From: Paragordius varius
Taxonomy: Eukaryota > Animalia > Nematomorpha
NCBI GenBank assembly: GCA_964247055.1
Contig: OZ176050.1
Location: 3,224,001-3,288,000 of the forward strand
Length of the DNA: 64,000 nucleotides
Direction of reading: 5' to 3'
The notes under the pieces were generated by a model that made no database searches, was not told the origin of the DNA, and was given only the letters and a program-made list of their open reading frames with translations. A program made the position numbers and the translations under genes. Positions 8,637 through 59,600 of the stretch are shown here, one piece after another; the first letter of the stretch is position 1; every line of letters begins with the position of its first letter.

Positions 8637-10592
8637 ATGAATTATTCCAGCGATAACTACAATAAGTATAATAATGATATTAATATTTTAATTCCCCGGG
8701 TTTTGTATGAGATCGGGCCTAACAGGTTACCAATCATAGAATATGGTGGGATTTTACCACTTTTACTTACCCTTGGGTTGGTTGGGAATGCCCTTTATTT
8801 TGCTTGCACGCTGCATCTCAAAACCAAAGATAAAGCAAATGTTTTCATTTACGTCCGAGCTTTATCTATTATGGATTTCACCATATGCACCATACTCATA
8901 GTTATCCCGTTTTGGTTTTGGTCCTGCAAACGGACCGTGTTTAACTCCAAATTTCTTGGTTCCATGCAACAGGCTTTAAATGCATGTCAATTGACCACAA
9001 ACATGACATCTGAAAATTCAACACTCCTATCATTCCAATATATTTTGCAGGGAGAATGGAACAAACCACAAATAGATCTTGTTGTTAACAGAAATATAGA
9101 GAGGATTAAGGAATCGTATTGTACGGATTCACGAAATTATTTTGTGTTAAAAATGGCAAATTTAATACTCCTACCTGTTATTTACATAAGTAATTGTCTA
9201 CGATTAGCCATGTCGCTTGACAGGCTAACAGCGTTGGCTTGGCCTTTCGTGTATCAAAAGGCATCACGAAACCGATATCCCCGATTTATAGTTATGGTTT
9301 TAGCCGTTACAGTTGCCTTACTCATACCGATTACCTATTATTTTCAGGAACACACGGATGTGGGACTGTCAGACTACCAAGAACAAATTAAAACTTGTAT
9401 GGTAACTCATAAAATGGCTAGCGATGAAAAGTCTAGAATGAACGATTTAAGCACAAAGTTCTTTGGCGTGCCCCAATTTGTGCTTGAAAATTCTCCTGTC
9501 TGGTTCGAACTTAAAGGAACAATTTTATCGACCTTTAAAACCACATCCTACAATTATTTTACACGTGCTATGTGTCTAATATTTTTCGTTGGACCAATGG
9601 CCATATCAACTGTCGCAAACATGTGGGTCATATCACTCATCACAAAACATGGGCGAAAGAATTTTAGTATATTCCCTTTGGCTGGCCCTAAAACGGGAAT
9701 TATAATACATAGTTCGACTAAAGGTGGAGATGGTATGCCAACCTCAAAGCAAGCCTTATCAAACTCAATCGAAACTAATAAAGTGAACACAACAATGTTA
9801 AAGGATGGAAAATCTAGCAGCACAAAAAGTTACAGCATGTTTTCAAATACTCAAAACTTATCACCAAGTGGAATAAACGCTAATTTTCACAATGTTTCGT
9901 CAAATTTTACTTTGAGTAAACATGATAAAGAGATGAATTTTCCTTCCACATTCTTATCTGTATCACACAACAATTTAACTGTACCCACTAAAACTGATTT
10001 TGTACCTCCCAATAATGCCTCTATGAAAATATTATCCCAAGATAAAAATACGTTTAAATGGTTACTACCTGCCCAAAAATTTATTCATTCATATAATAAA
10101 CGGAGTTATGAAGCGAGAACCGCTCCAGACTCCGACTTTAGAAGAGAGTTAACAAATGAGCCGTCAAATAAGCATAGTTCACGGATAAAGAAAAAAGATC
10201 TCAAAATTACTTGGCTTATGATTGGGTTAACTACGGAATTTTTTGTTCTCATGATCCCATTGATTGTTACTACACTCAGGGGCTTTCCTCCCCCTGACCT
10301 AGCCAACATTCTAAAATTATCCTCTTTGATTAGCGTTAAAAATTGCAATTCCAACAAACATGTAACGCATAATAATGTTGCGATCAATTTTCAAAATCCA
10401 ATAACAGTTGTGTCATTGAATTCTTTGCTCATAATATATTTGCTGTGGTATGGTAACCATACCTTAAGTGTTTACGTTAAATTTGGTTTGGACCCCACCA
10501 TACATGGTATTGTGGAAGCAAAATCGATCCTGTATCTCCGTAAAATTAGAAGATTTATTGTAAAATATCTTCCATTTTCTCACCATTATTAA
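8637..10592 (+). CDS. Intronless class A (rhodopsin-like, peptide/FMRFamide-receptor-like) GPCR, 651 aa
   Basis: Seven hydrophobic segments; TM1 LGLVGN, TM2 LSIMD, TM3 SLDRLTAL (DRY variant), TM5 GP; long loops. Confidence 0.85.
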   Translation: MNYSSDNYNKYNNDINILIPRVLYEIGPNRLPIIEYGGILPLLLTLGLVGNALYFACTLHLKTKDKANVFIYVRALSIMDFTICTILIVIPFWFWSCKRTVFNSKFLGSMQQALNACQLTTNMTSENSTLLSFQYILQGEWNKPQIDLVVNRNIERIKESYCTDSRNYFVLKMANLILLPVIYISNCLRLAMSLDRLTALAWPFVYQKASRNRYPRFIVMVLAVTVALLIPITYYFQEHTDVGLSDYQEQIKTCMVTHKMASDEKSRMNDLSTKFFGVPQFVLENSPVWFELKGTILSTFKTTSYNYFTRAMCLIFFVGPMAISTVANMWVISLITKHGRKNFSIFPLAGPKTGIIIHSSTKGGDGMPTSKQALSNSIETNKVNTTMLKDGKSSSTKSYSMFSNTQNLSPSGINANFHNVSSNFTLSKHDKEMNFPSTFLSVSHNNLTVPTKTDFVPPNNASMKILSQDKNTFKWLLPAQKFIHSYNKRSYEARTAPDSDFRRELTNEPSNKHSSRIKKKDLKITWLMIGLTTEFFVLMIPLIVTTLRGFPPPDLANILKLSSLISVKNCNSNKHVTHNNVAINFQNPITVVSLNSLLIIYLLWYGNHTLSVYVKFGLDPTIHGIVEAKSILYLRKIRRFIVKYLPFSHHY

Positions 10593-37655: not shown

Positions 37656-40600
37656 ATGCTTATGTGTGATTCAATTAATAAAAACACCTTGCCATCATCG
37701 AATCCCTTTGATGACGATTGGAATGTACAGGCTGAGAATCTCGGTAAATTCCATTTGCCTTCAAGTTAACTTTAGTTCTTTATTATAAAATTTTTCGGTT
37801 GATATGGTTAAAAAATTTGAATAAAAATGTAAATGCATATGACTCTGAGATATTTAATACTATTATCTATTTTGTAAATGGCAAACATTTTTGGGTGAAG
37901 AGTCCAAATTGTGCGTAACAATAAATTGAAACACTTTCTTTATAAAATTGGTTGGTAATATATATTATGTAGTTTTTTTTTATATAAAATATTTTATGAT
38001 GGTAATTTTAGAATCAAATACAGCGGAATGCCAGTATTCTAGGAATCCCTTTAGCGACAACTACAAAGATCCGGAATTAGGTTTTTGGCTTAATACTTAA
38101 TCAGTGTTAATTAGAAAATATTAAATAATATGGCGACACATTTTCATACTTGGAAAATTTGCCATTGCATTTGGTATATAAAGTGGACGTAATTGCGGGG
38201 TTTATGAACAATATATATTATTGTAGAAAAATGAATCATTCATGTTGTTTTAAATTTTTTGGGGTACGAGTTATATAATAAAGTTATTTTATTTTAGTGT
38301 GATTGGTATATATCGATGAATTTTTAAGTAAACAAAATTAATTTACAATTATTTAGATTCAAATGAAATGAATAAAACATTCTCTACGAATCCATTTGCC
38401 GATAACTATAGGGAGCCCAGTTTATTAGGTTATATTTTATTTAATTATTTAATTTATTGTTTACAATATAATTCTCCATATTTTCGCTAAAAATTTGTCG
38501 GTTTAAGTAAAAAGTGATTATACCAATTACAGCACCCTTATTAACCCTTGAACAATCTAAATATACCCTAAAATATTACGTGTTAAAATCTATATTTTTT
38601 ATATTTTATAAATTGAAAATCAACGTAACAGAAATAATAATACTATGACAATTCGTATCAATGATGAGCTATATTAGTGCCCGTTAAGGGTGAATATGAA
38701 TTGTTCTAGGGTCAATTTAAAGTGCAATGGTATGTTTTTGATAATTACCACCTTAAACTTTTACCCTAGAAAGCTGTAAAAGATTATTTAGCACTTGGTT
38801 AGAGATTTGGGCCAACACTTTGTTAAAGATCTGTCGAGATATATTTTTTATTGGATTCCTAATATCTCATAAGTTTGTGATAAAACTTGCTTATTGAATT
38901 TAATTATGTATTTATTCAATAATAAATTTTATAATTTTATGTATCATAAAACTAAACATGACGTTATATTATGATTGCAGATTTCAATCCCTTTCTATGT
39001 ATTGCATCCGTAAACCGCCAACACGTAAACAATGAAAAACCGAATTTTGAAGAAATAAACTTTGCAGAAACTAAAGAGTTTCCCTTCCTCACTGAAAGTT
39101 TACATAATCAAATGGAGGAAGGGGTCTTATCATCACATGGTAAAATATTTATGAAATTAAATGATACTTTTAACAAAAAAGGCCCATAACACAGTTGGCT
39201 TTAAATTTCTAAAACTGGTGAATGGATATGTATAAAATAATAATTAATTAAATAATATTTATTATATTTAAATTACATCCAGACTCAAAAATGAAAAATC
39301 AAAACACTTCACCTTTGAAACGAGCATTTAACAGGGCCTTTGGGGGCCGCCACCCCCAGAGCGCTTCTGGAGAATGTGGAAACGAAAATAAGATATCTCA
39401 AAAGGTAAATAGCAATAAAAAGAATATGTTCACCATATGTTTTGGATCCAAAAAAGAAAACTCAGAGTTAAAAACAAATGGAAGCCAACTGAAAGATATG
39501 GAACTATGCAAAATATCGTTTTCGAAAGACAATTCATCTAATGGAGACACTTGGGGCTGCCACCCTCAGAATGCTTCTGGAGAATGTAGAAACCAAACTA
39601 AGGTATCTCAAAAGGTAAATAGCAATAAAAAGAATATGTTCATATGTTTTCGATCCAAAAAAGAAAATTCAGAGTTGAAAACAAATGCAAGTCAACTGAA
39701 AGATATGGAACTATGCAAAATATCATTTTCGAAAGGCAAATCATTTAATGGAGACTCTGGGGGCCGCCACCCCCAGAGTGCTTCTGGAGAATGTGGAAAC
39801 GAAAATAAGATATCTCAAAAGGTAAATAGCAATAAAAAGAATATGTTCACCATATGTTTTAGATCCAAAAAAGAAAACTCAGAGTTAAAAACAAATGAAA
39901 GCCAAATGAAAGATATGGAACTATGCAAAATATCATTTTCAAATGACAAATCATCTAATGGAGACGGGGGCCGCCAACCCCAGAGCGCTCCCTTCCATAC
40001 AAACCAGAATGAAGGAAAAAAAGTCAGTAATTATAAAATGAGATTAAGTTGTCTATTTCCCTTTTTCAAGAAAAACCAAGATGAAGAAAAGTTAATTAAA
40101 TTTAACATTCATGATTCAGTAATTTTATCATCGACAGAATCTATTTCCATTGGTCACCATGGTATGATTTTTATCAAATTAATTCGTGAATTGTTTTGCC
40201 TGACACTGACAAATTTTATGACATTATAAATATCGGTAGAAATATATCCAATATTTAAACTATTGATAAATGAGTAAAAATAGAAAATTAATACTATATC
40301 TGTAATATTGTCAACTCAATCTAAATATACTAAAAAAAAGCGAATATTGAGAATTTTTTAGTTATTTTACCATAAACTACATTTTTTGTCAAAAAAATGT
40401 TTAAAATATTAATTAATATTTTGTTACTTTGAATCAACCAAAAATTAATAAAAGAACGTGTAATTCATATATTATTTTACATGCCATCAGATATCGAAAT
40501 CAATAAAGCTAAGTTTCAATGCAGTCAACCGTCGAGTACCAATTTACCCAACGAAAGGAAGGATAATTATAGTTAATGGAAGATAACCTTAATAAATATA

Positions 40601-41329: not shown

Positions 41330-44300
41330 TATTATTATATCATTCGAAATAGCGCAAAAAACTAAATCTTTCGCATAGTTATTTAAATCAATCTGATGTT
41401 AAAGTTATTTGGATATATGTGTCAAGATCTTTATATAAGTTAAAAATTTTAACAGAAACTAATCCAAAAATTATATAAATTATATTATAATTAATAGGGT
41501 TACATTAGAATATTTAAAAAAATCTCTAAAAAAGTTGGTTTGCTTTTTTAATAAAATTATTATTATAATATTTTACCTATTGGATACTACATTCCATAGT
41601 TACAACTGTAAATTTATTAATATCATAAAAGATTAAGAGTGCCTTTAACTTCTAATCTTTGAAATTGTGAAATTGATGCCAAAAATAATGAAATTGATAT
41701 GATAATAATTTTTAAGAAATAAAATAAAAATGACTGTTCATAATGACATAATAGCAATAAAGTGTTTTAATTAAAAATATTTTCTTGTGTATTCTTTTTT
41801 AACATTCATTGCCATATCGACAAAGTTTGAGTCATTTTCATTATTGTTTAGAAAATATATTAATTAAGAAAAAGGCTCTCGATTCGCTGGTTTGACGCTT
41901 GCTGAATCCAATATTAACCATCGATGTAAATTATATTAGTATGCATTTTATAGAGTTTTCATAACTTTTTCGAATGATATATTACAAATGGGCATTTGTT
42001 GTATATTTTCAGAGAAAAACATTTTTTGTTAAAATTTAAGGGGACATACATATAAAATATCAAAATATGCAAAATTCTTAGGCGGAATTATTTTTATTTT
42101 AGATTTACTGTTAAAATGATAGTAAATTTTAGAAAATGCAAAAAACTCGAGCGGTTGAAGAAATAGTTGTCTAGTGTTATGAGTACCATAGGAATAAATC
42201 ATGGAAATTAAATATAAAATAAATTCATGATAAAAAGAAAAATCTTTGGGAGATTTATAAAATATTCATATGCTTAATATCGAAAAATTGCAAAAGTTTT
42301 CACATATGGCCATTAAATTTTTTTTTAAAAATTAATCAAACTCAAAAACACCAAAAACATCCTCTATATTAGCATAGCTTAGTTATTTTACTTTTGGATG
42401 TCGGCTCTAGAATTTTCATTCTTTTAGCCCTTTCCAAAATGGATTGATATTTTATAAATAAACCCAAAAAAAACGAGATAACATGATCTAAATATATATT
42501 ACATGGTAATTTTCGTAATAATACTATTTTAATAAAAATTTTGTTGAAAGGTATTTTATGGTATTTAATCATAGTTAAAACCGTGAATATATACTTAAAA
42601 ATATATTTCCATTAATTCGTCCATTATAAAAGGTCAGTTTGCTTCTATATTTAATTTTCTTGTCTCCATGCCACAATATACGCTTCAACAAAATCCCAAC
42701 AATAATTTTTAACGATACTTAACTTTTTGATATCAAATCTACATCATATATATTGTTACAATAATAGTCCATTTTAAAGAGGAATAAAGACTAACCCATT
42801 TAAATTTTGTATTGTTTTACCTTTTAAATAGAGTTTATGATGGCAATCATATTTTTTGCAATGAACTATTTAGCTTTATCAAAAAAATTTATTTAGCATA
42901 TTTGCGCAAATTTGATTCTATGAATTACTCTCCATTTAACCAAAACCACTATAAAAATTTTAATGTATTTTTTATTAAAAATATATATTTTTTGTTTTCC
43001 TGCACTTATTTTCCTACGATGTAAACATTTGTGCTTTTTACCGTATATTTTCCTCAGAATTATGCGCCATGAAATTTGTAACAATATTTATGGGTTATTA
43101 TCAACTTATAAATCTAAATCTATTTTGACGCTATCAATATCCAACACAATTAGTATTGCTTAAATCAAAAATATTATAAGATTAGTTTAATCACATCTGT
43201 TGTTGTAGTTTAATTTTGATTTATTGCTATTTCAAGGTGTAATGCCCGAATTGGCTAGGAAATTGAGTTTCGATTATAAGAGTGCAAAATAATAGAAAAA
43301 ATATTTAATCATATGGTTTTATCACACTATATATTATTTGCAAGTTTCACTCTATTAACCATCTGCCATAACAAACCATGTACTTTTAATCGTTTTAGTT
43401 TAATATTTTTTATATCTAAATATATGACTAATCGGCCTATGAAAACAATAACCCAAAGTGTAAAGTAATCCATACTATATTTTGATTATCCTGATTTTAT
43501 GCACTAAATAATTCAATGCTGAACATTTTTTTAACACATTTGTTCGCCTTCTTGTTCAAAAGGAATGTAAAAAGCACAATTTTTTAAATTTGGAGATAAA
43601 TGGGTCTTTGTCACTTTAAGGTGATACGATCGTCATCGAATTATATAAAAAAGGGTATTTGTCGTATAGAAATTTTTCTATGTTGATACTCTCTAATAGC
43701 ATAAAATGTGGGTTCATCAAAATTTTTATAAAAATTAGATTTAATATTTTTAGCATGTATGTTAAAATGTTATTGTGCAATCTTGACACTATAGCATCCC
43801 ATATGAGAGGGATCCAGAATTTAACACCGGAACCCACATCTATTATTTAATATAAATATTGTTTTGCTTTACAAGTGTCATATAATATATATTTTGTTAA
43901 TGTTTTTTGGATTGTAGCGTCCAGATTCCACCAAAAATACGTTTAGCATAATGTTAGCCAATTTTGCTATTTTTCCATAGGGAGCATCTGGCTTAAATTA
44001 ATATTTTTTAAATGATTCGCAAAAACTCAATGCACCATTCTTGATCCATTTTTTGCGCTCAATTAATATATTTCCCGGTTTTATTTTTAAATCAAAGGCA
44101 ATCAAACAAAATGGTATCAGTAAAAATATTTTTTACAAGAATATAATGTTTTTTTTAAATGGATACTTGATTTGAATTATAAATTAATTATAATATAATT
44201 AGAACTTGACACAATCAATCATTTATCAAAACTTTTGGCAGAATAATTTAATTGGTCAAAAACAAATTTAATATAGTGTAACTAAAACCTCGCGATATGA

Positions 44301-45530
44301 ATCCTCTAATCTAATATATTATGTCTAAAGAAAATAAAAATAGGAATAATGATGATTAATTTTGTAAATCGGTAGTTCGCTTGCCATTTGTCATCTTATA
44401 GATTATAACTCCCATTGTGGTCATAAATCAATTAGTTTGAGCGTCCTATTTATATCAATTATTTACACATTTTTTACAGTTTTTAGTATTATACGTTTCA
44501 TTGCATTTGTTATAGCCTAAGAAGAATGATACGTCCCCCTGACCAGAGGCGTGTAAAACCGTAGCAAGGTGGTAAGGGTCGTCCTGTGTGGACAGTGACC
44601 CCTTTTCTGAAAAAATTGAGCTTGATTTACTTTACAACGAATTAAATATTGAATTTAATTTTTCGATTTCCAATTCATAGCTAGTTTTTTATTTAATTTT
44701 GCCAGATATCATATACAACACAAGAAAATTACACTGGACAACAAATTTTTCTGCCATTCGAGTTTTTTGCATTTTCTGATATCTCGATGGAATAATTTTG
44801 TATAATTTATTTTTTTAATTATGCGCCCTCTTTATCAAAATTTAACTAAAAAATGTTTTTCTTTGAAAATATACAAGTAATGCCCATTTGTAATATATCA
44901 TTCAAAAGAGTAATAAAAACTCGATAAAATGCATATTAATATGCATCGACAGTTAATATTGGACACAAAGAGCGACAAACGCGCGAAGCGAGAGCATTTT
45001 TTTTAATTATTATATTTTTTAAACTAGATGAAAATAGCTCAAACTTTGTTTAGATGGTGATGAATGTCCAAAAAAGTTAACACAAGAAAGTTTTTTTGAT
45101 TAAAACATTTTTTATTGCTTTTATGTCACTCAAAACAGCCATTTTTAAGTTTTTTGTTTTTTAAAAATTACCATCTCATCAATATTAATTTATTTTCTTT
45201 ACGAGGCTGATAATTAGGAAATTTTAATAAAACAAGTTTAAGGTATTTTTGATATTTTATAGCCAATATGTAATAATTTACAGTTATAACTATGCATTTT
45301 AGTATCCACTAGGTATATTTATGATAATAATAATATTTATTAAAAAAGCAAACCAAAAGCTATTTCAAACATTTTTTTAAAATTAAATACTAGATATTCC
45401 AATTAGTTTGTTTGTGAAAATTCTTGACTTATTTCGACCATTTATATCCAAATAACTTTTACATCCGACTGATTTAAATGACTTACTACCATTTAAAAGA
45501 TGCAGTTTTTTGCGCTCTTTCGAATAATAT
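41330..45530. repeat. Large inverted-repeat (foldback-like) element with ~1-kb arms
   Basis: 41330-42350 is the reverse complement of 44590-45530, e.g. GAATGATATATTACAAATGGGCATT / AATGCCCATTTGTAATATATCATTC; ~2.2-kb spacer with no intact ORF. Confidence 0.75.
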
Positions 45531-46379
45531 AAAATACATGGCTTCATATCTAAAACTTTTAATTTTCGATATTTCGAGTTTAATGTTAAATCGGGGCCAA
45601 TTATCGATAAACTCCAATATAAAAAAATTCTTCCATGCTAGACCAATTTTCTTTTCAGATATATAAATTATGTACTTTAATGAAATAAATTTTAAATTTA
45701 AAAGAATGGCAGTTAAAAAAAGTTAAAATTTGTTTTCTAGTGTTATTATTGTTGAGCAGTAAAAAACAAAAAACAATTTGCCAACAAAATTGTATAGATC
45801 TTTCTTAATCCGGCAATAAGTAGTAAACTAACAATATCTATACCATCATTTCAAATTCACCATAAAAACAAATTAGGTGTTTTTGGGAATATAACTCATC
45901 ATTAATGTATAATATATTTTTACGACATATTCATTTTTTCAGCATTATATTAATTTTCAGATATAAAGATAAAGGTTTTAAATTGTAAACAATTTATTTT
46001 AGGGCAAATTCGAATTGTTTGATGGTAAATTTGAATTGTTCTCGGGTGAATTTGAATTGTATATGGTATATAATAATAACGTATGCTATACTAAACTGGA
46101 GTAATAATCAGATAAACTCAAAGAATTTATAATTATAACCATAATAAATTAGTTTAAATTAAAGCTAGCTATCATTATATTCAGATTATTAATGACTCAT
46201 TATAAAATTGGCAAGTAAAATATGAATAATGTTTATCTAATTTATATATCGATTAACGGTTGTATGCTAATTGTCAAATAGATTAGATGTCACAAAAAAA
46301 CATTCGATATAAATAAAACATTATCGATCGGTTTTTGGGTAAGTTTTGCCTGATATTTAAATTTTTTTGTTTTTTGAAT

Positions 46380-49300
46380 ATGCTAAAATTTTTATCATTA
46401 CCGATATTAGTCTTAGTTTGTTGCCAGGGAATTCTGTCACAATGGGTAAATATTTTTTTGTAGTGCTTATAGGTTATTGTGGAGGATACATTATTAATAT
46501 CTGGTTTATTTCAGAATGCCTTGTTTAATATTTAAAAATATTTGTTGATTTTTCTGTTTATTTGCTTTAATTCTAAATAAAAATTTAATGGCGTAGTAAG
46601 GGTATAAGGGGCTAATTTAAGTCATAATAAATAAATGAATAATCTTTTATGATATAAGGGAAAAAAATAAATCCTTGATATTCTTCAATCAAGTTTTAAA
46701 AGCTTTATAAAATTTATTGCGGTTGCCTTTAAAGACTGCGAATTTTATTTGCGGGTGCCAGAAGCCGCGATGGTAGGGCGGACCCTAGAATGTCTCTATG
46801 GAGCGCCACAGTCGTAATTTTTTCATCACTTTCAATTAGCACTGGGCAGAATGTTAAAGCGTTTTACAATCCTGAAATAATTTAAGTTCTCACCCTTTAA
46901 TAAAAATGGGATATAATGTAAACTCTATAAAAAAATTATTTATATGTTCTCATCTAGACCAGACCTTACCCTATACAATATCCCCCAAGTGGTGGTGGTG
47001 GTGGTCAAATACAGATACGCCCTTTACCCAATCAGCCAGGAGGGATTCAGATATCTCGCCCAGCTGTTGTTCCATCACGTGATCGCGATGATGATGACGA
47101 CCATGATGAGGATCACGATCATGACGACGATCACGTGATTATGAGACAACAACCAATGCCTCCATTGGGTCAAGGCGGTTATCAAAGTTCGTCTTCGAGC
47201 GTTAATGCAAGGTATACAAAAAAAATAATTTTGGTTTGGTAGTTTTTTTGGCATTCTTTGGTTTCTGAGGCTGCCTGATTCTAATTTATCTGGCCGAGGT
47301 AAATATTTATTATGTTGTCATGTTGCGGTATAACAGTAAACAGTCATATTATGGCTTATTGGGTCTTTTAACTGATTCATAGGCCAAAATTTTTTTATTT
47401 CCAACCATCTTACCATATAATAATTGTATTGATAATATATGTTGAATAATAATTAAAACATTCATGGCACATTTTTAACAATCATCATAAATATTTAAGA
47501 CAATGGAATAATGGTGATGTCCGGATTATATCGATCGAAATGGTACCAGCCACTCAGCCTTATCCAATCGGGCATCCTAATATGATTTTAAATCAACAAG
47601 GGGCAGGTATTAGAACTCCTCCACCTCATATCATGCAACCAATACCAGGCGCTAATCCCTATAATCAACAATCTGGGATGGGTAAATATTATTTTTTTAT
47701 CTTTTTTACATTTTTTATTAAACATTTTCGTTCAATTTATCTCTTATGATTAAATAAATGTCTATTTGTTTAATATAGATAAATTATAAAATATTAATTT
47801 AGGAGGCGGTGGAGGATATCTTGGTCGCAGAACTTCGTATCGAGGAACGATTCGCAATCATGGTTCCTTTAATGCCCAAGATGATGCAAATAAATTGTAT
47901 CAGGCTATGAAAGGATTTGGTAAATGATAATATTATTTTTTCATTTTATTTAAAAAAATTGGAATTTTTCAGCGTTATTTTTTACAGGCAGTGTGGATCG
48001 AACCACAATATAGTAGATTTAATATCATTTATTATTATATATTTCAGGAACTGATGAAACAACAGTCATTAATATATTGACAAAACGATCGAATTTACAG
48101 AGACAGGAAATAGCTAAAACATACGAAGCCATGTTTCACAACGTAAAAAATATATTATTATAAATTTGATTTAACTAGCCTCTTTTAAAAATGCATAAAT
48201 ATTTTTTATACATAACAGAGTTTAAAGAAGGACATTAAGGGAGATTTTTCTGGAACTACGGAGGATATGTTAGTTGCTTTACTCAAACCCAGAGCTGCTT
48301 ATTTGGCTCATCTAATTCATGAAGCAGTCAGGGTTTAGTTATTTTATATCCACCTGTTCAATAATTCATATTTTATAAAAGAAAAAATTAGTTAACCCTA
48401 AAATTTTTTTTGGAGTGATGCTAACTTATTCATATAATAGTTGGTTCGGCAACAGTAGTGTATGAAAAAAGCAACAAAATAATATTTTTTTTATCTTTAT
48501 AAACATTTTATTGTTTTTTCCATACACTACTGCGTTTCCAATTGACCAACTGTAATGTGAAGCCAGCATTAAAATGTATACTGTATTATCAACTAACATT
48601 ATATAACTCAACGCATTTCATATAGTTTATTGGAACTGATTTGGGTGAATTATCTGAAACATTGTGCTCATTGAGCCCACAAGATATAGAGGAAGTTAAA
48701 AATGCTTATCGACAAAGTAATTTGTTTAATATTACCTATATATGCACATATATCAATATATGTTTTTGTTTCATTTTTATAATGTATTATTATAGAATAC
48801 AAAAAGGACTTGGTTCAAGCAATCCGAAGTGACACTTCTGGACCCGTACAAGAATTTTTACTCAAATATCTCAATGTGAGCATATCCTTAATTTTAATAA
48901 ATTGCCTTATGTTAAAAAATTAATGTTTACGTTTATTGTATAACTGTTAATATATTTTTAGTCTCAAGGTACAAGTTATACAGGACCGCAGCAAATTGCC
49001 ACGGATGCACAGGTTTTGTTATTTATTTCTGAATTGAATCTTAATACGGAAATTATTTAAACATTGTGTGTTAACGTTTCATTAATGAATCACTAGATTA
49101 TGGCATCCAAAGGGGTGAATAATATGGAAGCGAAAGAAGTCATTGATATCCTAGCCACCAGGAGCCAAAATGATTTGAAAAACATTTTTGACAAATATAA
49201 GCAAGACACAGGACGAGACTTTTTAAATATAGTTAAGGATGAAAGAACGTTGCATTATACGCAAGCTGGAAAGCTTAAGAAAGTTCTGAAAAATTATGGT

Positions 49301-52170
49301 AAATGTCCTAAAATCATATTTTTTAGATCGATAACTTTTTCAATATGGTAAATTTTTGGCATAAATGAATCGGTTCCAATATTTTCACGTATTTTTTAAC
49401 AGTAATCCACTTATTAAATCCATGTTTTGACCCACTCTTTTCTCCAAATACGAGGCTTTTTACAAATAATTTTCAGGGTTGAAGCATATTCAAAAACATC
49501 ATATTTAATTAAGTTTAATAATGGCCATTAAATACTATACCATTTCTTAGATGAAAACGTTTTCCCAGTCAATCGAAACGTTTTCCTAGTCAATCGAAAC
49601 ATTTTCACAGTCAATCGAAACGTTTTCCCAGTCAATAAAATCATTTTCCCAATAAAAACGTTTTTCCAGTCAATGAAAACGGTTTTATTTTTGATGATAA
49701 ATATCAAAACAGGATATAAAAATAACTTTTAACCATTATCACCGTAATATTAGGATATTATTTTTTATTAAAACACAATTATTGGATGACAATTTTTCCA
49801 ATTATGTTCCAGTTCACAATCATTGACTTATTTAAAAGTTATATTTTTGATTTGGGATTTAGATAATATATGGTTCGTATTAAAATTTGCGGAACGCTTT
49901 AAAAAAGTTTCATTCAAGTTTGACGATGAAAATACTGTCGGAAAAAATATCTAAAAATTTTTTTTTCATAAAATGGTTTTGATTTATTATTTAATAAAAA
50001 AGACATTTGACTAATACAGGGGTGTCACACCAAAAGGCTTCGCTGGCCGTATTTTTAACTCAAAAGGACGGCGTTCCTCATTCGAAATATATACGGGTAT
50101 TCTTAAATAATTTTTTGATTAGACATAAGACTGTAAAATACAAACACAATATAATAATTTTTTTTAATAGGTTGCCAATTTAATAGACTCATTCAGAATA
50201 AATTGCGCAAGAAATATGAATTTTACTAAGATTTTGTGGGCATATTTTTGCATATGGATTTTCATTTTCGCGGGCCGCACAAAGATACTCGGAGGGCCGC
50301 GTTTGGCCCCCGCTGGACCTAATGATAAATATTATATAGAGTAGAGAAAAACTCATATTTAATATCCAATATGAAGTGTTAAATGACTTTAAAATAAAAA
50401 TGGTATATTTTTATTAATTTTATTATTTCATCCATAACTATAGATATTTTAAGTTAGCCGCAAATATTAATGCGAAACCTCAATATAAAAAATAAAATCT
50501 TAAAAATATCACAAATTCCAAAAATATAACTTTTAAAGAATAAGTCAATGATTGTGGACTGGAACATAATTGGAAAAATTGTCATTCAATTATTGTGTTT
50601 TTATATAAAATAATATCCTAATATTACGCTGATAATGGTGTAAAGATATTTTTATATCTTATTTGATACTTATCATCAAAAATAAAACCGTTTTTATTGA
50701 CTGGGAAAACGTTTTTATTGATTGGAAGACTGGGAAAATGTTTCGATTGACTCGGAAAATAAATTGTCCGCGCGTAAAATGATATAGTGGCAGGTCACAA
50801 GTATAATATAAGTTGATTATAACTATTTACCCCTCCTGATTTTAGGCTGTCGCAATCGTGGTTAGATATTGATAATTAGGGACACAAATTAATCACTCAT
50901 CAAAGAATTAGATGTCTTTCTTTTTGGCACATATAACAATTTTCTCAGCTTAATTAATATCAAATAATAATATACAGTTTAGAGTCTCTTTTTCCTTTTT
51001 ATATTAAAGGATAAGTAAGGACTTAAATTATATCCGGACTTGTGAAGGCTTTAACACTCACTTGCCCAGGGCTGACATTGATGATGGAAAAATTGCGTAG
51101 CTTCGGAGTTCGAACTCTGGCACGCAGTGTAAGAGTCCTGTGCCCTACCTACTACACCATCACGCCTTCGTTAAATAATGTAATTATCTTAAATATCTTA
51201 TTATAAGTTTTTATTAATCAAGCTTGTTTCAAGCAGCAGTTTTTAATTATCTAAGCACTGTATTTTAGATTTTCAACAATAACATCAAGCAATCCATAAT
51301 AATCGATATAAGATATACAAATTTTATCTGCACAATATAGCACTGTGGTACTCAAACAGCACCCCACGAGCCGCTCAGCCTTAATAATGCTTTTTATGGA
51401 GAATTATTTATTTAGTTTTTTAATATACTTATATTGAGCTATCTACAGAGTCAAACTTAGACATTTTTCCGGTATTCACGGCCCTTGAGACAAAATATTT
51501 TTTTGCGACTCCTTAAGATTATTTGGTGAGTGCCACTGAAATAACACGATATATATTCATTGTCCGAAAATTAATCGTTGTTCTACTTATCAATTATGTA
51601 AATAACATTAATATTTAATGATATTTATTAATTTTAGTGTATTGTGTGCTAAATCCCCCAGAATACTATGCTCACCGTATTCATCAAGCTTTAAAGGTAC
51701 AGTCTATATTTATACTGCTTTTATAATTAACATAAATTACTAATTATTGAATTTTCAATGTGATATCTTAGGGTCCAGGAACCAAAGAGAAAAAGTTGAT
51801 TAGATTATTGGTTAGTCGAAGTGAAACCGATTTACAGGACATCAAGGATGCCTATCAACAAAAATATGGGAAATCTTTGAAAAAAGCCATCGATGTATTT
51901 ATATTTTAATTTATATATAATGTAAAAAGAATCTTTTGTCTGGCCTCTAAAATAGGATAAATTATTTGGCTCATTAACACTAGCTACTATTTTTAATATA
52001 GAGTGATACATCCAGAAACTTAAGAAAAGTAGTAGATGGAATTATTGATGGCAATTAAAAATTAGGTATATTTATTACTTATTTTAAACATGTTTATATT
52101 ATAGGGTGATATATCTGGACAATATCAACACCTTATAAATGCTTTGCTGGAAGGCAATTCCTCACAATAA
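46380..52170 (+). CDS. Annexin with predicted signal peptide, long P/G/Q- and D/H-rich N-terminus and two alternative last exons (496/499 aa)
   Basis: Exons 46380-46445, 46958-47211, 47500-47681, 47803-47919, 48048-48142, 48219-48332, 48626-48716, 48796-48875, 48962-49012, 49097-49298, 51638-51696, 51772-51894, then 52002-52058 or 52105-52170; phases all consistent. Motifs [29 protein letters not shown]. Core certain; exon 1 inferred. Confidence 0.88.
46757..46925 (+). mobile_element. Decayed copy of the tRNA-derived SINE
   Basis: Body AATTTTTTCATCA..GCACTGGGCAG..TGTTAAAGC..TAATTTAAGT matches the reverse complement of 50990-51100. Confidence 0.55.
49550..50760. mobile_element. Foldback-type element with ~20-bp subrepeats at the outer ends
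   Basis: 49550-49860 inverted against 50520-50760; tandem GTCAATCGAAACGTTTTCCCA units. Confidence 0.75.
50017..50315. mobile_element. hAT (Charlie-type) MITE nested in the foldback loop
   Basis: Starts CAGGGGTGTC; GCGGGCCGCA/GGGCCGCG motifs; imperfect 8-bp flanks GACTAATA / GACCTAAT; core shared with 52314. Confidence 0.6.
50980..51166 (-). mobile_element. tRNA(Lys)-derived SINE
   Basis: - strand GGCGTGATGGTGTAGTAGGTAGGGCACAGGACTCTTACACTGCGTGCCAGAGTTCGAACTC: A box, CTT loop, B box, then a non-tRNA body; second copy at 46757. Confidence 0.7.
51343..51538. mobile_element. Small hAT-like MITE
   Basis: Imperfect TIR CTGTGGTACTCA / TGAGTGCCACTG. Confidence 0.45.
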
Positions 52171-52587: not shown

Positions 52588-53689
52588 CATAAATAAAATG
52601 TGTATGGATAAAAGAAAATCGATGACTCTACGATCGGAAAATTGTCCCTTTTTATAACAGATGAATCAAAAATTGGGTATATATACACCAATAATTGATA
52701 TAAATAATTTTAAAATAGTATTTGTTGGATGTAAGCCATATTATATATAATAAACTTTTTAAAAATTAAAAAACAACTCTAATTTATAGATGATCTTTCA
52801 TATATCATTCATCTTCGCTGTTATATCTTTGAGTATCATATATAAAGATTTTGATGATAAAAATATTGCGATCGGCATTGTCATATAATTTAGTTTAGTT
52901 AGAACCGTGTTATGCGATACAATTGCAAATTCATTTTTTACACTCTATTTATGCTCATTTAACTTACTGGTTTAGATTAACTTAGTAACATGCATACACA
53001 ATATATAAGATATTCTCATCGCAAAATCTCATTATTAATTAGTTTATTTTAGTTTACTAGTCTTTATAGACTTTCAGTATCACATTTTAAAATTAATTTT
53101 TTTAAAATAGCCTTTTTTAATCTAGTTTATTTATTGATTTTTGGAATGTAGTATTTAGCTTTAACCTAAAATAAGGCAGCACGATGTGCGCAAATTTTTC
53201 GTTTTTCATATTTTAATGACTTAACGCTTAAAATCAAAAGTATGAGAATTATACATTTTTTTATCAATTTACATATTTTATCATGTTTTTTTAAACCACA
53301 TCGCCGCTCTGTGTATTCTTTAAATCATGTTTACCGGATTAAATAGGATTCAACAATCGGGTTTTACTTGGACGAAAAATCGGATTTAATTTTTAAAGAT
53401 AGTCACAGAATCATCAAAAAATATAAAAAAATTTAACGATACTGAAAAGACTTATATTAATTAATATATCCATGTTTGATACTTTTCTCGATCCTCTGCG
53501 AAAATGGAGTCCTAACTAGAGATAAATATAAATACTTCTACGTTAAACAGCATATTATATCGCAATTCACTCATGTAAACACATGCTTTTAATCGAGTGG
53601 GAAAGGTACGGTATACCTACCCATCTCGTATCGATATTTTTTTTACCAAAAACATTAATTTTATACCTTCTCCGAATATTAGAAATAGT

Positions 53690-56600
53690 TAGATTCTATT
53701 TCTTGCATATCCATAACATATTTCTTATCACATTCTCCCATTCTAAGCACATTCTGCTGATGTTGAAATCACGTAATCTCAGCATCCGCATCGCCACGTG
53801 GAACTTACGTGGAGCCTACAAAAACCACAAACAAGATATTGTCGTTAACGAAATGACTAAGCATAAAATTGACATACAAGGAATTTCAGAATCACACATT
53901 CCCTCTACCGGAACTTTAGAATTTGACAATCATATTTTGTATTATTCCGGCCACGACTCGTTAAAATACAACGGTGTCGGCATAATAATGAACAAAAAAC
54001 TAGCTAACTTATCGGACATTTTTAATCCAATCAATGATCGTATTATTGCAATCCGCATACAAACTACCCCTCAACCCATTCCTCCAAATTTACGCATCTA
54101 CCTCCTCTTACAGCGATGACGACTGTGAAAAATTTTATAGCGATCTCGACTTGGCGATTTTCCAAATTTCAAAAAAGGATATCACATTTATCTTAGGCGA
54201 CTTCAACTCAATCATCGGAATAGACAAAACACCTCCTATGACGGGCGGCATGGGCTTGGGCATAAAAAACGAGAGAGGAGACAGATTGATCGAATTTTGT
54301 GCTAACCATTGTTTCTTCGTCGCAAACACTTTTTTAAACAGCCCAAACGACGTCTATACACATGGCGTTCCCCGTGTCAAAGATACCGTAACCAAATTGA
54401 CTTCTTAGGTATGGTAAAATACAAAAGTTCATTTCATAATGTCAAATGCCTACCAGGATCGGATTGCTACAGCGACCACAACCTATTGATCGCCAAACTC
54501 CGCATTAAATTACAACTTCCTAAAACATCCAAACCCACAAGAACAAGATTAGATTATGATACAATCGACGACATGTTTAGCACCGCTTTATCAAATCGTT
54601 TCGATTGTCTTGATCATAATTCCGAAAACTATCAGGATATAAACTTCTTTTGGAACGCTATATAATAATCTCCGAGACGCAGCCGACGAAATTATTCGGC
54701 CTCTCATACGCAATAAACAAAAAATAAAATTGTCAACCAAAAGTCTTGAGATCGCAGAAAAACGTAGAGAATCCAAAATTAAATGAAAATGGGATGAATA
54801 CAAACAACTAAACAGTGAATTTCAGAAGAGTGCAAGAGAGGACAAAAATAAGTATTATGACCAACTATGTGAAAAATTAGAAACAAACGCCAAAAATAAC
54901 CGAAACCTTTTTGCTCATGCAAACAATATTATTCCACATAAAAAAAGTTTTTTTTAAGGGACCTATACGACAACAACTCAATCGTCACTAAAAAAGACGA
55001 AATTCGCAAACTATGGCATAAACACATAAGCAAACTATACAATGTAAATAACCCCCCGACTATTAACGAACTTTCTCAACAAAAAGAACCACCTATTATG
55101 AAAGAAGAAGTGGAACTCGCGATAAAACACTCTAGCACTACTGAAATAATAAAATATATTCCAATCGATATACTTCACCAAATTATTTCAAACCATATTT
55201 GAGATGGAAAAAATTCCTGAGGATTGGTGCACATCCATTATGATTCAGATTTTAAAAAAGGGTAACCCAGAACTGTGCGACAACTATCGCACCATAGCGC
55301 TCATAACCAGGTGTCCAAAGTTTTTCTAAAATAATACAGTTTCGATTAAATACCATTCTTGACCCCGAGATATCCACGATTCAGGCTGGTTTTCGAAAAG
55401 GTAGAGGATGCCGAGATATGATATGTAATATGAGGTGGATAATCGAGAAACACATCGAATTTAACAAAGAATTGCATATGTGCTTTGTCGATTTATCCAA
55501 AGCATTTGATTCCATCTAGCATAATAAACTACGGAAAGCTCTAAAACAACTTGGAGTGTCAACACATCTAATCAACGTCATATTTTCAATATACTTAAAT
55601 TCCACGGCTGTAATATCTACACCTCACGGTATATCTAAGGTGACCAGATTTTTTGAAGGAAAAAGCGGGACAAATCTGAGAAAGGGGGGGGGTCATTGGG
55701 GGGTACAACCAAAAGATTTTATTCAAAAAATTTATTGTAATATTTATTTATTTTTAACACAGATACATTATAAATATAAAAAAATTAGTACCTTACAGGT
55801 TGTTTGTACCTTATTCAATAAATTTACATGTGCACGAACAAAGGGTGAAGTGATTGTAATATTCTAGAAAAAATTATAAAGACGAAATCATCATAAAATG
55901 CGCTGGGTGATGCAAGAAGCGACAAAAAATATTTTAATCAATTTAGCGAATAATCTTAATCAAAAAATTATTGGCAGATACACAACGCTATTCAAACAGC
56001 TATTGATTTTTTACCCCTGGATGTGGTAAATATAGATGTTAAAATGCTTGGATATTGTAGAACTGTTGGTTAACTCTTTTGCCAGCGATTGAAATATTTA
56101 TAAAAATGTGATTTCCTAGAATCCTATTTTTTATCACAGGACAAAGGTCAAAATTCCAAGTCAAAAAAGGTTAGAAAATAATTATATACCATTACCTAAT
56201 CGCAATATTATAAAGCATCCAGAAAAACAAGGCTCAATGAATAGCCAGAATATAAAAATGTTTTATACAAACAGAAACGATTATTTGGAAGACAAGAGGC
56301 TGCATAATGACACTTTTTTAGTCTCATTATTAAATAAATATATTGAATGAAAACTTATATTATGGACAAAAGAAAAAAATACGTAGGAGAGAAATGGTTA
56401 AAATAATCATTTTTAAACAAATTATGTTCCATACAATAATATTTTAATCGTAGAATTTACATTATCTTTACATGAACCACTGCCATTGAACGCGTTTTTC
56501 CACAGCAAATTAAGTAAGGAAACGGAATCAAATTTAAATGTTGAATATATGCCATTTTATGTGTTCAAACATAATTTGACAAATTATGAAGACTTATACA

Positions 56601-59600
56601 ATATTTTAAGTAATTTTGTTTATTTTTTAACATAAAAACTTTATTAATATAAGAAAATATTTTCTTCTTTGGTATATTTTTTGTTTGAGTGAATGCGTTT
56701 TAGCGGATTGTCATTTTAAAAATATTATAGAAGTCTTCACAAGAATGTGTCTAATTATATTTGACAGATAAAAGGGCCTTTAAAGGTTCAACATTTAAAT
56801 TTGATTTTTTCGATGTCCACACATATACTGTGGAAAAAACGCGCTCAGTAGCAGCGTTGGTTCCAGGTAAAGATAGTGCGAATTCCACAATTTTAATATT
56901 ATGTATGTAATTATAGTTGGCTTCAAAATGATAAAATATTTCCAACCATTTCTTTTCTACTGTATATTTTTCTTTTGTCCATAATTTAAGGAAAGATAAC
57001 TTTTTGAAAATTTTTGGGAACAGATATAATCAAATGATTTTTGAACATCGCACCAATTAAATTCTGTTTTTATTGTTATCCAAAGAAAATGATTAATTTC
57101 ATTGAATTGCGTCGTCCAGTCTTCCAAATAATTTTTACAGTTTGTATAAAATATTTTTATATGGTACAGGATATCTTGGCGATTTTTTAAGCCTTGTTTT
57201 TCTAAATTATTTATTATATTGCGGATGGTTAATGGTATAAAATTATTTTCTAACCGTTCTTGACATTGGAATTTTAGGTTACTAACTTAATTGGCTACTT
57301 CGATTGCCGAAATTTTGTCACCTTCTATAAATTTAATAACATTTTGAAAGAGAGAAGCTTGATTATGTAAGAATTCTAACCATATTTTTGAAGAATCACT
57401 TTTAAAAACTTTTTTAAAGTTGTAGGACATTTGTCCTGTGGTAAAAAATGATTTTAAAGTATCATACATTTTTAAAATTCTTTCGATAGCTGGCATAAAA
57501 GCTAACCAACGAGTTTTACAATATCCAAGCATTTTTTGATATTGAATTTCTGCATTTTCACAGAATTCTTTAAGCGTTTCAACACGTACCGTTTATATAT
57601 AAAAATAGGAATATATTTTAACAACTACATTTTCCACATCTAGGGGTAACAAATCAGCAGCTGTTTGAATATCATTGGGTATTATATGCGCTGCACACCC
57701 AACGCCAATGTTTTGATTAAGGTTTTCTGCTAATTTATGAAAAATATTTTTTGTTCCCCTCCTTGCTCCGAAGTTCGTATTGGTGTTGTCAGCGCAATAT
57801 GCGATAATTTTATCTTTAAAATTATTTTATTATAGAATATGCATTACTGAAGTAAATATTATTTCGGAATTTTTACCGGGTAAAATTAAATCTAAAATTT
57901 TAATTTTTACTCCGGTTTCTGAATCAAAATATCTTATTAAAGTGAGAAATAATTTTGTTTCATGGTGATTTGATGATCAGAGTATAGGGATAAGAAATTA
58001 ATTTTCAGCAAATCTTTTTGTATTTCAGAAAATGCATGTGGCGAAAGGACATTGCACACAATGGCTTCAGCCTTTGTACGGGCACATGTAAATTTTTTAT
58101 GGAATAAGGTACGAATAACCTGTGAGGTACAATCCATGGATCTAAAGGATTGATTGTGATTAACCGCGTGAAAAGATAAAACGCCTTCGGCTAGTGCCAA
58201 ATTCTTTTCTTCTTCTCCAAAAGCGGTTTTTCGAAAAAAAATCGCTCATTTTGTAAGATGATGCCGCCATATCTAAACATTTTATATGTTGTGTTTCCAC
58301 ATGCTTTGTAATATCATGCTTGCCGCCATGTGCTAGAGTGAATTCCCCCTCGCATATAAGACATTTAATTGATTGATTATTCGTTTTTTTGATAAAAGAA
58401 AATTCTTTCATTAATTCATCGTTGAATTTACAACCTCTTTTTGTGCTCATATTTATAAACTACGATTAGCATATTATTACTTATATTACCTTAATTTTCT
58501 GAAATAAACGTGTAAGCTACTGATTTGTGGTATCAATTTGTCTTTTAATCTAAAGATTTGTGGTATTAACTTGGCTTTTTGATAATGATGATAGTAGTAG
58601 TAGGAAGCAAAGTGTATAATCATATGATATAAATTCGAAAAAAATAAATATTTTTAATTTAAAAATAAAAAATTTTAATTTAAAATTGAATAGATTTTAA
58701 AGATATTTGATGATAAAAAAAATTTATTTGTGTTAAAAAAATTTTTTTTATATAATCGGGAAAAAGCGGGACATTTTGAAAACGTAGCGGGAGGCGGAAC
58801 AAAGTGTGAAAAAGCGGGACTGTCCCGCCAAAAGCGGGACGTCTGGTCACCTTAGGTATATCTGACTCATGTAAGGTAAAAGTCGGCCTCCGTCAAGGAT
58901 GCGTTTTATCACCAATTCTTTTTAACGCATACCTGGAGTGCATTATAAGAAACATCCCACAAACTTATGGCATCAATGTAGGTGGAAACCTACTTACATC
59001 CGTTCACTACGCGGATGATACAGTCCTATTCGCAGACAGTGTAGACACATTATCGCAAGCCTTGCAAGTGTTTACAACTGAATGCAATAATTTTGGATTA
59101 AATATCAATTTCAAAAAAACAAAAGTCATGCAAATAAATCCGGCTCAAACCAATCCAATAATCCTCAACGGCAACCAGATCGAAACAGTTAGCAGCCACA
59201 CGTACTTAGATAGCAGTATTAATAGTGAGAACAACTCTACGCCAGAAATAAAGCAAAGAATTGCTATTGCTAAAGCAGTAACTTTTAAATATAACAGGAT
59301 TTGGATGTCGCATGACATTAAACTACAAACCAAAATCAGATTAATTAAAGGTACAGTTTTTCCCTTCTTCATGTATGGGGGGGGGGGAAAGCTGGCTGAA
59401 AAAATATGATGAACGTCAAATAAACTCTTTCGAATTATGGGTTTGGAGGAAACTTCTTTAAACAAAATGGACAGACAAAGTTTCAAACACCACCATTCTA
59501 AATAAAATTAACCCAGAAATGTCACTTCTAGGCAGCTTAATACGGCAAAAACTCTCCTTCTTCGGGCACATTATGAGATCCAACTCACTTGAAAAATCAC

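Follow-up and report, generated by a model that had tools for sequence, protein, structure and literature searches.

The window, by which is meant the whole 64,000-nucleotide stretch of Paragordius varius DNA that was analysed, probably carries one 13-exon annexin gene in which a dedicated leader exon encodes a cleavable signal peptide of the Sec type, with a predicted secreted product that belongs to a nematomorph annexin clade. Both the predicted gene structure and the models of its relatives lend good support to this reading, in which the annexin opens with a classical N-terminal signal peptide, encoded by a separate exon, and hence probably enters the ER. Built from the window sequence, the gene model extends over 5.8 kb of the forward strand (46380-52170), with GT-AG borders throughout, an unbroken frame and products of 496 or 499 residues depending on the choice of terminal exon (Table 1). 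The window is A+T-rich, with a G+C content of 23-35% in 2-kb steps. Translation bore out the leader exon that had been claimed in the original prediction, with an ATG at 46380, 22 codons to 46445 and a phase-0 end at a gtaaat donor, a hexamer that also follows exons 3, 4, and 10 of this gene. The join of this exon to position 46958 had also been claimed, and was described as leading without a break into the annexin core. The tctag acceptor and the phase 0 of this join proved right, but exon 2 encodes a part of an N-terminal arm, with the core being reached only across two more introns, by way of exons 3 and 4.

Table 1. Features of the annexin gene and its immediate surroundings (positions are those of the window).
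Feature	Position	Strand	Observation
TATAAATA motif, possible core promoter element	46308..46315	+	Read directly; 72 nt 5' of the ATG
Exon 1, 22-codon leader, phase-0 end at gtaaat donor	46380..46445	+	Passes a crude signal-peptide filter
Intron 1, 512 nt, gtaaat...tctag	46446..46957	+	In-frame TAG at 46955-46957 abuts the acceptor
Exon 2, first stretch of the Pro/Gly/Gln-rich arm	46958..47211	+	No Pfam family
Exon 3, second stretch of the arm	47500..47681	+	No Pfam family
Exon 4, from the last stretch of the arm (Gly run) into annexin repeat 1	47803..47919	+	tblastn with Gordionus annexins, 47835-47921
Exons 5-10, annexin repeats 1 to 3 (48048-48142, 48219-48332, 48626-48716, 48796-48875, 48962-49012, 49097-49298)	48048..49298	+	PF00191 on exon translations; tblastn with Gordionus annexins
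High-copy foldback element in intron 10, non-coding	49551..50760	.	Inverted ends of ~280 nt
Exons 11-12, annexin repeat 4 (51638-51696, 51772-51894)	51638..51894	+	PF00191, E = 1.3e-15; tblastn
Terminal exon A, end ...DGIIDGN	52002..52058	+	Matches C-termini of the closest Gordionus paralogs
Alternative terminal exon B	52105..52170	+	Own acceptor and stop; nearer to the canonical annexin C-terminus

At the 3' end of the gene, terminal exons A and B lie in tandem, each with its own acceptor and stop codon, and the end encoded by exon B resembles the canonical annexin end of more distant Gordionus paralogs. The pair looks like a duplicated last exon, the two copies of which may be used in a mutually exclusive manner. 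At the 5' end, the TATAAATA motif is weakly compatible with a transcription start near 46340, such a motif being common by nature in DNA of ~27% G+C.

The assignment of the protein to the four-repeat annexins relies on a Pfam run on the separate exon translations of the gene, in which PF00191 was matched on all four repeats. Repeats 1, 3, and 4 scored above the cut-off of the family (E = 9.7e-9 for repeat 1 and 9.6e-9 for repeat 3, with the value for repeat 4 listed in Table 1), and the two halves of repeat 2 (E = 0.003 and 0.0007) fell under it, each of these pieces being just 26-30 residues long. The whole core aligns with that of P0150, an annexin of Gordionus sp. m RMFG-2023 in which four Pfam repeats are present, with 57% identity over 301 residues. 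Judged by sequence only, the type II calcium-loop motif (G-x-G-T followed by an acidic residue some 38-40 positions on) is canonical in repeat 1 (GFGT...D) and in repeat 4 (GPGT...D). In repeat 2 the loop reads FIGT, the first Gly having been lost, and repeat 3 has no GT motif, a loss common to the window protein and its Gordionus relatives. Ahead of the core lies a low-complexity arm of 154 residues, encoded by exons 2 and 3 together with the 5' part of exon 4, which contains 22 Pro, 22 Gly, and 16 Gln residues and has no counterpart in P0150. An 18-residue cluster of Asp and His is found in exon 2 (47081-47134), followed by an internal Met at 47141. The predicted mature protein contains two Cys residues and no N-glycosylation sequon.

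The leader itself comprises a short n-region (MLK), a hydrophobic core of 12 residues and a c-region with small residues, where cleavage would be possible after G17 or S20. It was assessed with a crude signal-peptide filter, a rule of our own and distinct from SignalP, under which a protein must begin with Met, carry no net negative charge ahead of the core, contain an uncharged nine-residue stretch with a mean hydropathy of at least 2.2 and have small residues at positions -3 and -1. The window leader passes this filter with a mean hydropathy of 3.08 in its best nine-residue stretch, a net charge of +1 ahead of this stretch and three possible cut sites, after residues 15, 17, and 20. By this crude rule it displays the sequence features of a Sec-type signal, namely an N-terminal position, a basic n-region, an uncharged core whose length falls within 7-15 residues, and small residues at -3 and -1. 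In length, its hydrophobic core fits a signal that is cleaved better than it fits a membrane anchor. Neither KDEL nor HDEL occurs at either of the two alternative C-termini, and the protein has no membrane anchor. Since it carries no ER-retention motif and the hydrophobic core appears too short for a stable anchor, export would be the default fate of the protein.

The structure of exon 2 makes its own case for a coding exon further upstream. Its frame opens exactly at the acceptor, where the in-frame TAG lies, and no ATG, GTG or TTG occurs before 47135, leaving a first stretch of 59 codons that is uninterrupted, comparatively G+C-rich and without a start codon. In exon 4 no Met precedes repeat 1 of the annexin core, and a direct join of exon 1 to exon 4 would break the frame. 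Because the frame of exon 2 is closed at its acceptor, its first 59 codons hold no start and the core could not begin by itself before repeat 1, an upstream ATG exon ending in phase 0 is required. A scan of positions 43000-46957 was carried out for ATG frames of at least 15 codons ending in phase 0 at any GT. Three signal-like frames were detected, with a good donor only at 46380-46445, and among ATG exons of this minimum length the 4 kb 5' of exon 2 contained none besides exon 1 that ends at a good donor. Two further signal-like frames appear in intron 1 if any GT is counted as a donor. A+T-rich DNA readily yields hydrophobic open frames, and the rate at which such frames arise depends on the donor that is demanded. 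When a GT[AG]A[AGT]T donor was demanded, both strands of the whole window (128 kb) together gave 30 phase-0 ATG frames with 15 codons or more, two of which pass the signal filter, one of them being exon 1. This corresponds to a chance rate of ~0.008 signal-like frames per kb per strand for a strong donor, with the rate rising to ~0.2 per kb once weak donors are allowed.

Comparison with other annexins provides evidence of a different kind. Protein searches returned no protein of the window's own species and none near-identical to the window product, and the best match to exon 10 in an exhaustive protein search was an annexin of Gordionus sp. m RMFG-2023 (P0001, 37% identity). The assembly of this organism has been described as that of Gordionus montsenyensis, with a size of 288 Mb, a G+C content of 26.9% and a BRAKER annotation made with RNA-seq (bioRxiv 10.1101/2023.06.26.546503). 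Of 257 annexins gathered for comparison, 6 passed the crude filter, all of them from Gordionus (P0150, P0151, P0043, P0006, P0153, and P0155). None of the approximately 250 other annexins, from vertebrates, insects, nematodes, tardigrades, molluscs, flatworms, and sponges, passed it. A signal-like leader thus opens six of the seven closest Gordionus annexin models, the exception being P0033. These leaders are those of predicted gene models, and in four of the six leader-bearing models the same sequence is present in the submitters' and in the NCBI annotation, as the source names suggest. The layout of the leader exon was mapped in four of the Gordionus genes (P0150, P0151, P0043, and P0153), and in all four, as in the window gene, the leader has the first coding exon to itself, an exon 66-78 nt long with a phase-0 end. 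Leader exon and first intron measure 66 nt and 512 nt in the window annexin, 72 nt and 130 nt in P0150, 78 nt and 4.9 kb in P0151, 66 nt and 4.2 kb in P0043, and 69 nt and 71 nt in P0153.

The exception may be only apparent. The frame of P0033 runs 5' past its annotated ATG to an acceptor at about position 9964 of locus L002 (Gordionus OX940784.2), and an unannotated, signal-like phase-0 exon of 66 nt is found 1.66 kb 5' of this in-frame acceptor (L002 8241-8306), with no other frame of this kind in 10 kb of 5' sequence. The true first exon is probably missing from the public model of P0033. Shorter models with no leader have also been annotated beside long ones, P0001 beside P0150 and P0032 beside P0151, with P0001 being shortened at its C-terminus as well, and these may be either real isoforms or prediction artefacts. 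The model P0152 (XP_065315500.1, 'annexin A6-like', 1179 aa) contains hydrophobic, leader-like stretches between annexin tetrads, and its last 344 residues are those of P0006. Judging from this arrangement, P0152 is probably a false multi-tetrad model in which several leader-bearing annexin genes lying in tandem have been fused. Public annexin models from Gordionus should therefore be read with caution, given that some drop the leader (P0001, P0032, P0033) and that P0152 appears to fuse tandem genes. When the seven Gordionus annexins were used together in a profile search, the eight-repeat annexin A6 dominated the matches and no further nematomorph annexins emerged.

These findings bear on the reading that exon 1 is a chance hydrophobic frame, in which case the true first coding exon would lie elsewhere or be very short and the protein would be a cytosolic annexin with an arm of the A7/A11 type. 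The abundance of signal-like frames under weak donors speaks for such a reading, as do the long Pro/Gly-rich arms typical of the cytosolic annexins A7 and A11 (seen also in P0015 and P0020) and the RNA runs, which gave no match on the locus. The rarity of signal-like frames with a strong donor argues against it, and so do the lack, over the 4 kb upstream, of any other good-donor ATG exon that reaches 15 codons and the recurrence of a leader exon of like size and phase in the mapped relatives of the clade, to which P0033 adds a candidate. Taken together, a chance origin of the leader frame is considered unlikely.

A second alternative accepts the leader as real and assigns two products to the gene, one secreted and one cytosolic, with the latter arising through a second start site or through skipping of the first ATG and beginning at Met 47141. 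The elements invoked for a cytosolic isoform in the original prediction, an internal ATG at 47141 and a GTAAGT at 46339-46344, are both present in the sequence, and the pairs of leaderless and long Gordionus models (P0001/P0150 and P0032/P0151) could be taken as a parallel. If transcription begins ~30 nt after the TATAAATA motif at 46308, however, the donor at 46339 would sit at or before the transcript start, and the short Gordionus models are possibly prediction artefacts, P0001 being shortened at its C-terminus too. The existence of a second, cytosolic product is regarded as improbable.

The relationships among these proteins were studied in a maximum-likelihood tree of 33 annexin cores, which included eight nematomorph proteins and two nematode annexins and did not contain the Heterodera 4F01 annexin discussed below. 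The eight nematomorph annexins, seven from Gordionus and one from the window, form one clade with a support of 98/94, within which the window protein is sister to P0150 (support 95/63). The clade is divided into three deep sub-branches, each with leader-bearing members. The A11a and A7-like sequences are placed outside the nematomorph clade, the likeness of the window protein to annexins A7 and A11 being one of arm composition only. Since leader-bearing members are distributed throughout one clade, the leader appears to be ancestral to the nematomorph annexins sampled. As the simplest reading of the tree, a leader exon was probably gained once, before the clade diversified, and has since persisted across several duplications and in two species.

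Transcript evidence was sought in public sequencing runs. A search of sequencing runs for the window locus returned DNA runs only and no RNA run, and three presumed RNA runs carrying the same species label yielded no contig on positions 45900-51899, corresponding to ~6 kb of the gene. These runs are tiny (19-30 million letters of contigs), with tissue and stage unspecified, and their emptiness may reflect stage, depth or filtering and is no proof of silence. A DNA run (X5) was found to be nearly identical to the window, offering no divergence for a test of constraint on exon 1. The depth of this run is ~10 over exon 1, far under the thousands recorded over repeats of the window.

The empty RNA runs could also be explained by a gene that is silent or decaying, such as a recent duplicate in the course of being lost, whose leader would have no present function. 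The end branch of the window protein, longer than that of its Gordionus sister (0.62 versus 0.18), and the eroded calcium loops of repeats 2 and 3 would be in keeping with such decay. Against this stand the intact frames and canonical splice sites that all thirteen exons keep across 5.8 kb, the fact that the loss of the repeat-3 loop is found in the Gordionus relatives too, and the small size and unspecified origin of the RNA runs. Decay of the gene is very improbable on this evidence.

The surroundings of the gene were also examined. The foldback element of intron 10 has ends built of ~21-nt tandem units and reaches a depth of hundreds to thousands in run X5. A tRNA-derived SINE near 51040-51150 was considered and is unsupported, with no tRNA having been found in the 44-53 kb interval. 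Upstream of the gene, an open frame on the forward strand (39291-40229, 312 residues) consists of three copies of a unit of ~80-90 residues rich in Cys, Ser, Asn, and Lys, for which no Pfam family was matched above the cut-off. Downstream, positions 53600-59600 hold decayed pieces of non-LTR retroelements, in which endonuclease-like and reverse-transcriptase-like frames are broken by stops. The retroelement proteins of this region are ~33% identical to those of an element upstream of P0150 in Gordionus. When the window was compared with 114 kb of Gordionus DNA, no shared sequence was found outside the annexin exons and no repeats were shared. The window does not stem from the Gordionus loci compared, and an origin in that species is improbable. 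MCM10 had been entertained downstream of the window annexin as a hint of synteny and did not hold on re-examination. In Gordionus, POLR3C is located ~10 kb 3' of P0150 (L003 27259-27573).

If the leader acts as predicted, SRP would carry the nascent chain to the ER, where signal peptidase would cut after G17 or S20. The exported mature protein would then consist of the 154-residue arm with its Asp/His cluster, followed by the four-repeat annexin core. Outside the cell, at millimolar calcium, this core would be expected to bind acidic phospholipids on exposed membranes, and the arm could, more speculatively, serve in metal-ion binding or as a tether that holds the core to the cuticle or matrix. 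The parasitic life of horsehair worms and the analogy with an annexin effector of Heterodera suggest that the protein may act in the cuticle or where parasite and host meet.

Annexins are textbook membrane binders of the cytosolic face, and those found outside cells are thought to exit by unconventional routes. Recent helminth work has restated this view, with annexins being described as having no signal peptide and as leaving cells in a non-classical manner (PMC11195529). The same premise underlay the original prediction of a secreted annexin, in which a signal peptide was taken to be without precedent in the family. The signal-like leader in that prediction is upheld by gene structure and by the relatives of the window protein, but the premise was too strong. 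It is contradicted by the 4F01 effectors of Heterodera, for which a leader has been predicted by SignalP (PMC2791119), and by the public Gordionus models that start with leaders. With regard to the Nematomorpha, the literature search retrieved no paper joining this phylum and annexins, and annexins are not mentioned in the Gordionus genome paper (bioRxiv 10.1101/2023.06.26.546503) or in a comparative nematomorph preprint.

A broader scenario can be drawn from these observations, which in our judgement stands at an even balance between being right and being wrong. It would have horsehair worms turning a whole annexin branch, perhaps most of their repertoire, into ER-secreted proteins through one leader-exon gain and repeated duplication thereafter, with the window member adding an A7/A11-like arm that bears a putative metal-binding Asp/His cluster, and with action in the cuticle or on membranes of the host haemocoel. 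If true, theirs would be the first animal phylum in which a family of annexins is systematically extracellular, and this would indicate that the annexin fold can move wholesale into the classical secretory pathway and stay there through long evolution, in at least eight genes and two species. Such a family would offer a natural system for the study of annexin action at extracellular calcium levels, as well as candidates for proteins of the cuticle or the host interface in a parasitic phylum that has hardly been studied.

Among known systems, the vertebrate annexins A7 and A11 share with the window protein a four-repeat core preceded by a long N-terminal arm rich in Pro, Gly, Gln, and Tyr (cf. 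P0015 and P0020). They differ from it in being cytosolic and in having no signal peptide, and the window protein is not placed with them in the tree. A cluster of Asp and His is not a known feature of A7 or A11. Within the nematomorphs, P0150 (XP_065314991.1 / CAK9296554.1, annexin-B12-like), the public record of which carries an automatic name only, has a phase-0 leader exon and the same type of terminal exon as the window gene. In P0150 the leader is separated from the core by ~20 residues, whereas the window gene devotes two extra exons and part of exon 4 to its arm. The 'secretory' annexins of flatworms, such as B3/B38 of Echinococcus, resemble the window protein in being annexins of parasitic worms that act extracellularly, but they have been described as exiting through non-classical routes with no signal peptide (PMC11195529).

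The closest precedent is provided by the 4F01 annexin-like effectors of Heterodera glycines and H. schachtii, which are made in a secretory gland cell and have a SignalP-predicted leader cut between residues 21 and 22. Among nematode annexins, a leader has been stated for Heterodera species only (PMC2791119). As in the window gene, a four-repeat annexin of a parasitic ecdysozoan worm is found behind a predicted cleavable signal peptide. In contrast to the window protein, 4F01, which shares 41% identity with nex-1 of Caenorhabditis elegans, has a short N-terminus (PMC2791119), whereas the window leader lies on an exon of its own, is followed by the 154-residue low-complexity arm and belongs to a nematomorph-only clade of at least eight genes, apart from the two nematode annexins in the tree. 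We infer that the nematomorph and Heterodera leaders are of independent origin, the tree having been built from annexins other than 4F01. Signal-peptide annexins as such are thus already known from Heterodera, and what is new is a lineage-wide, exon-encoded leader on a private nematomorph annexin clade, combined in the window gene with an A7/A11-like arm.
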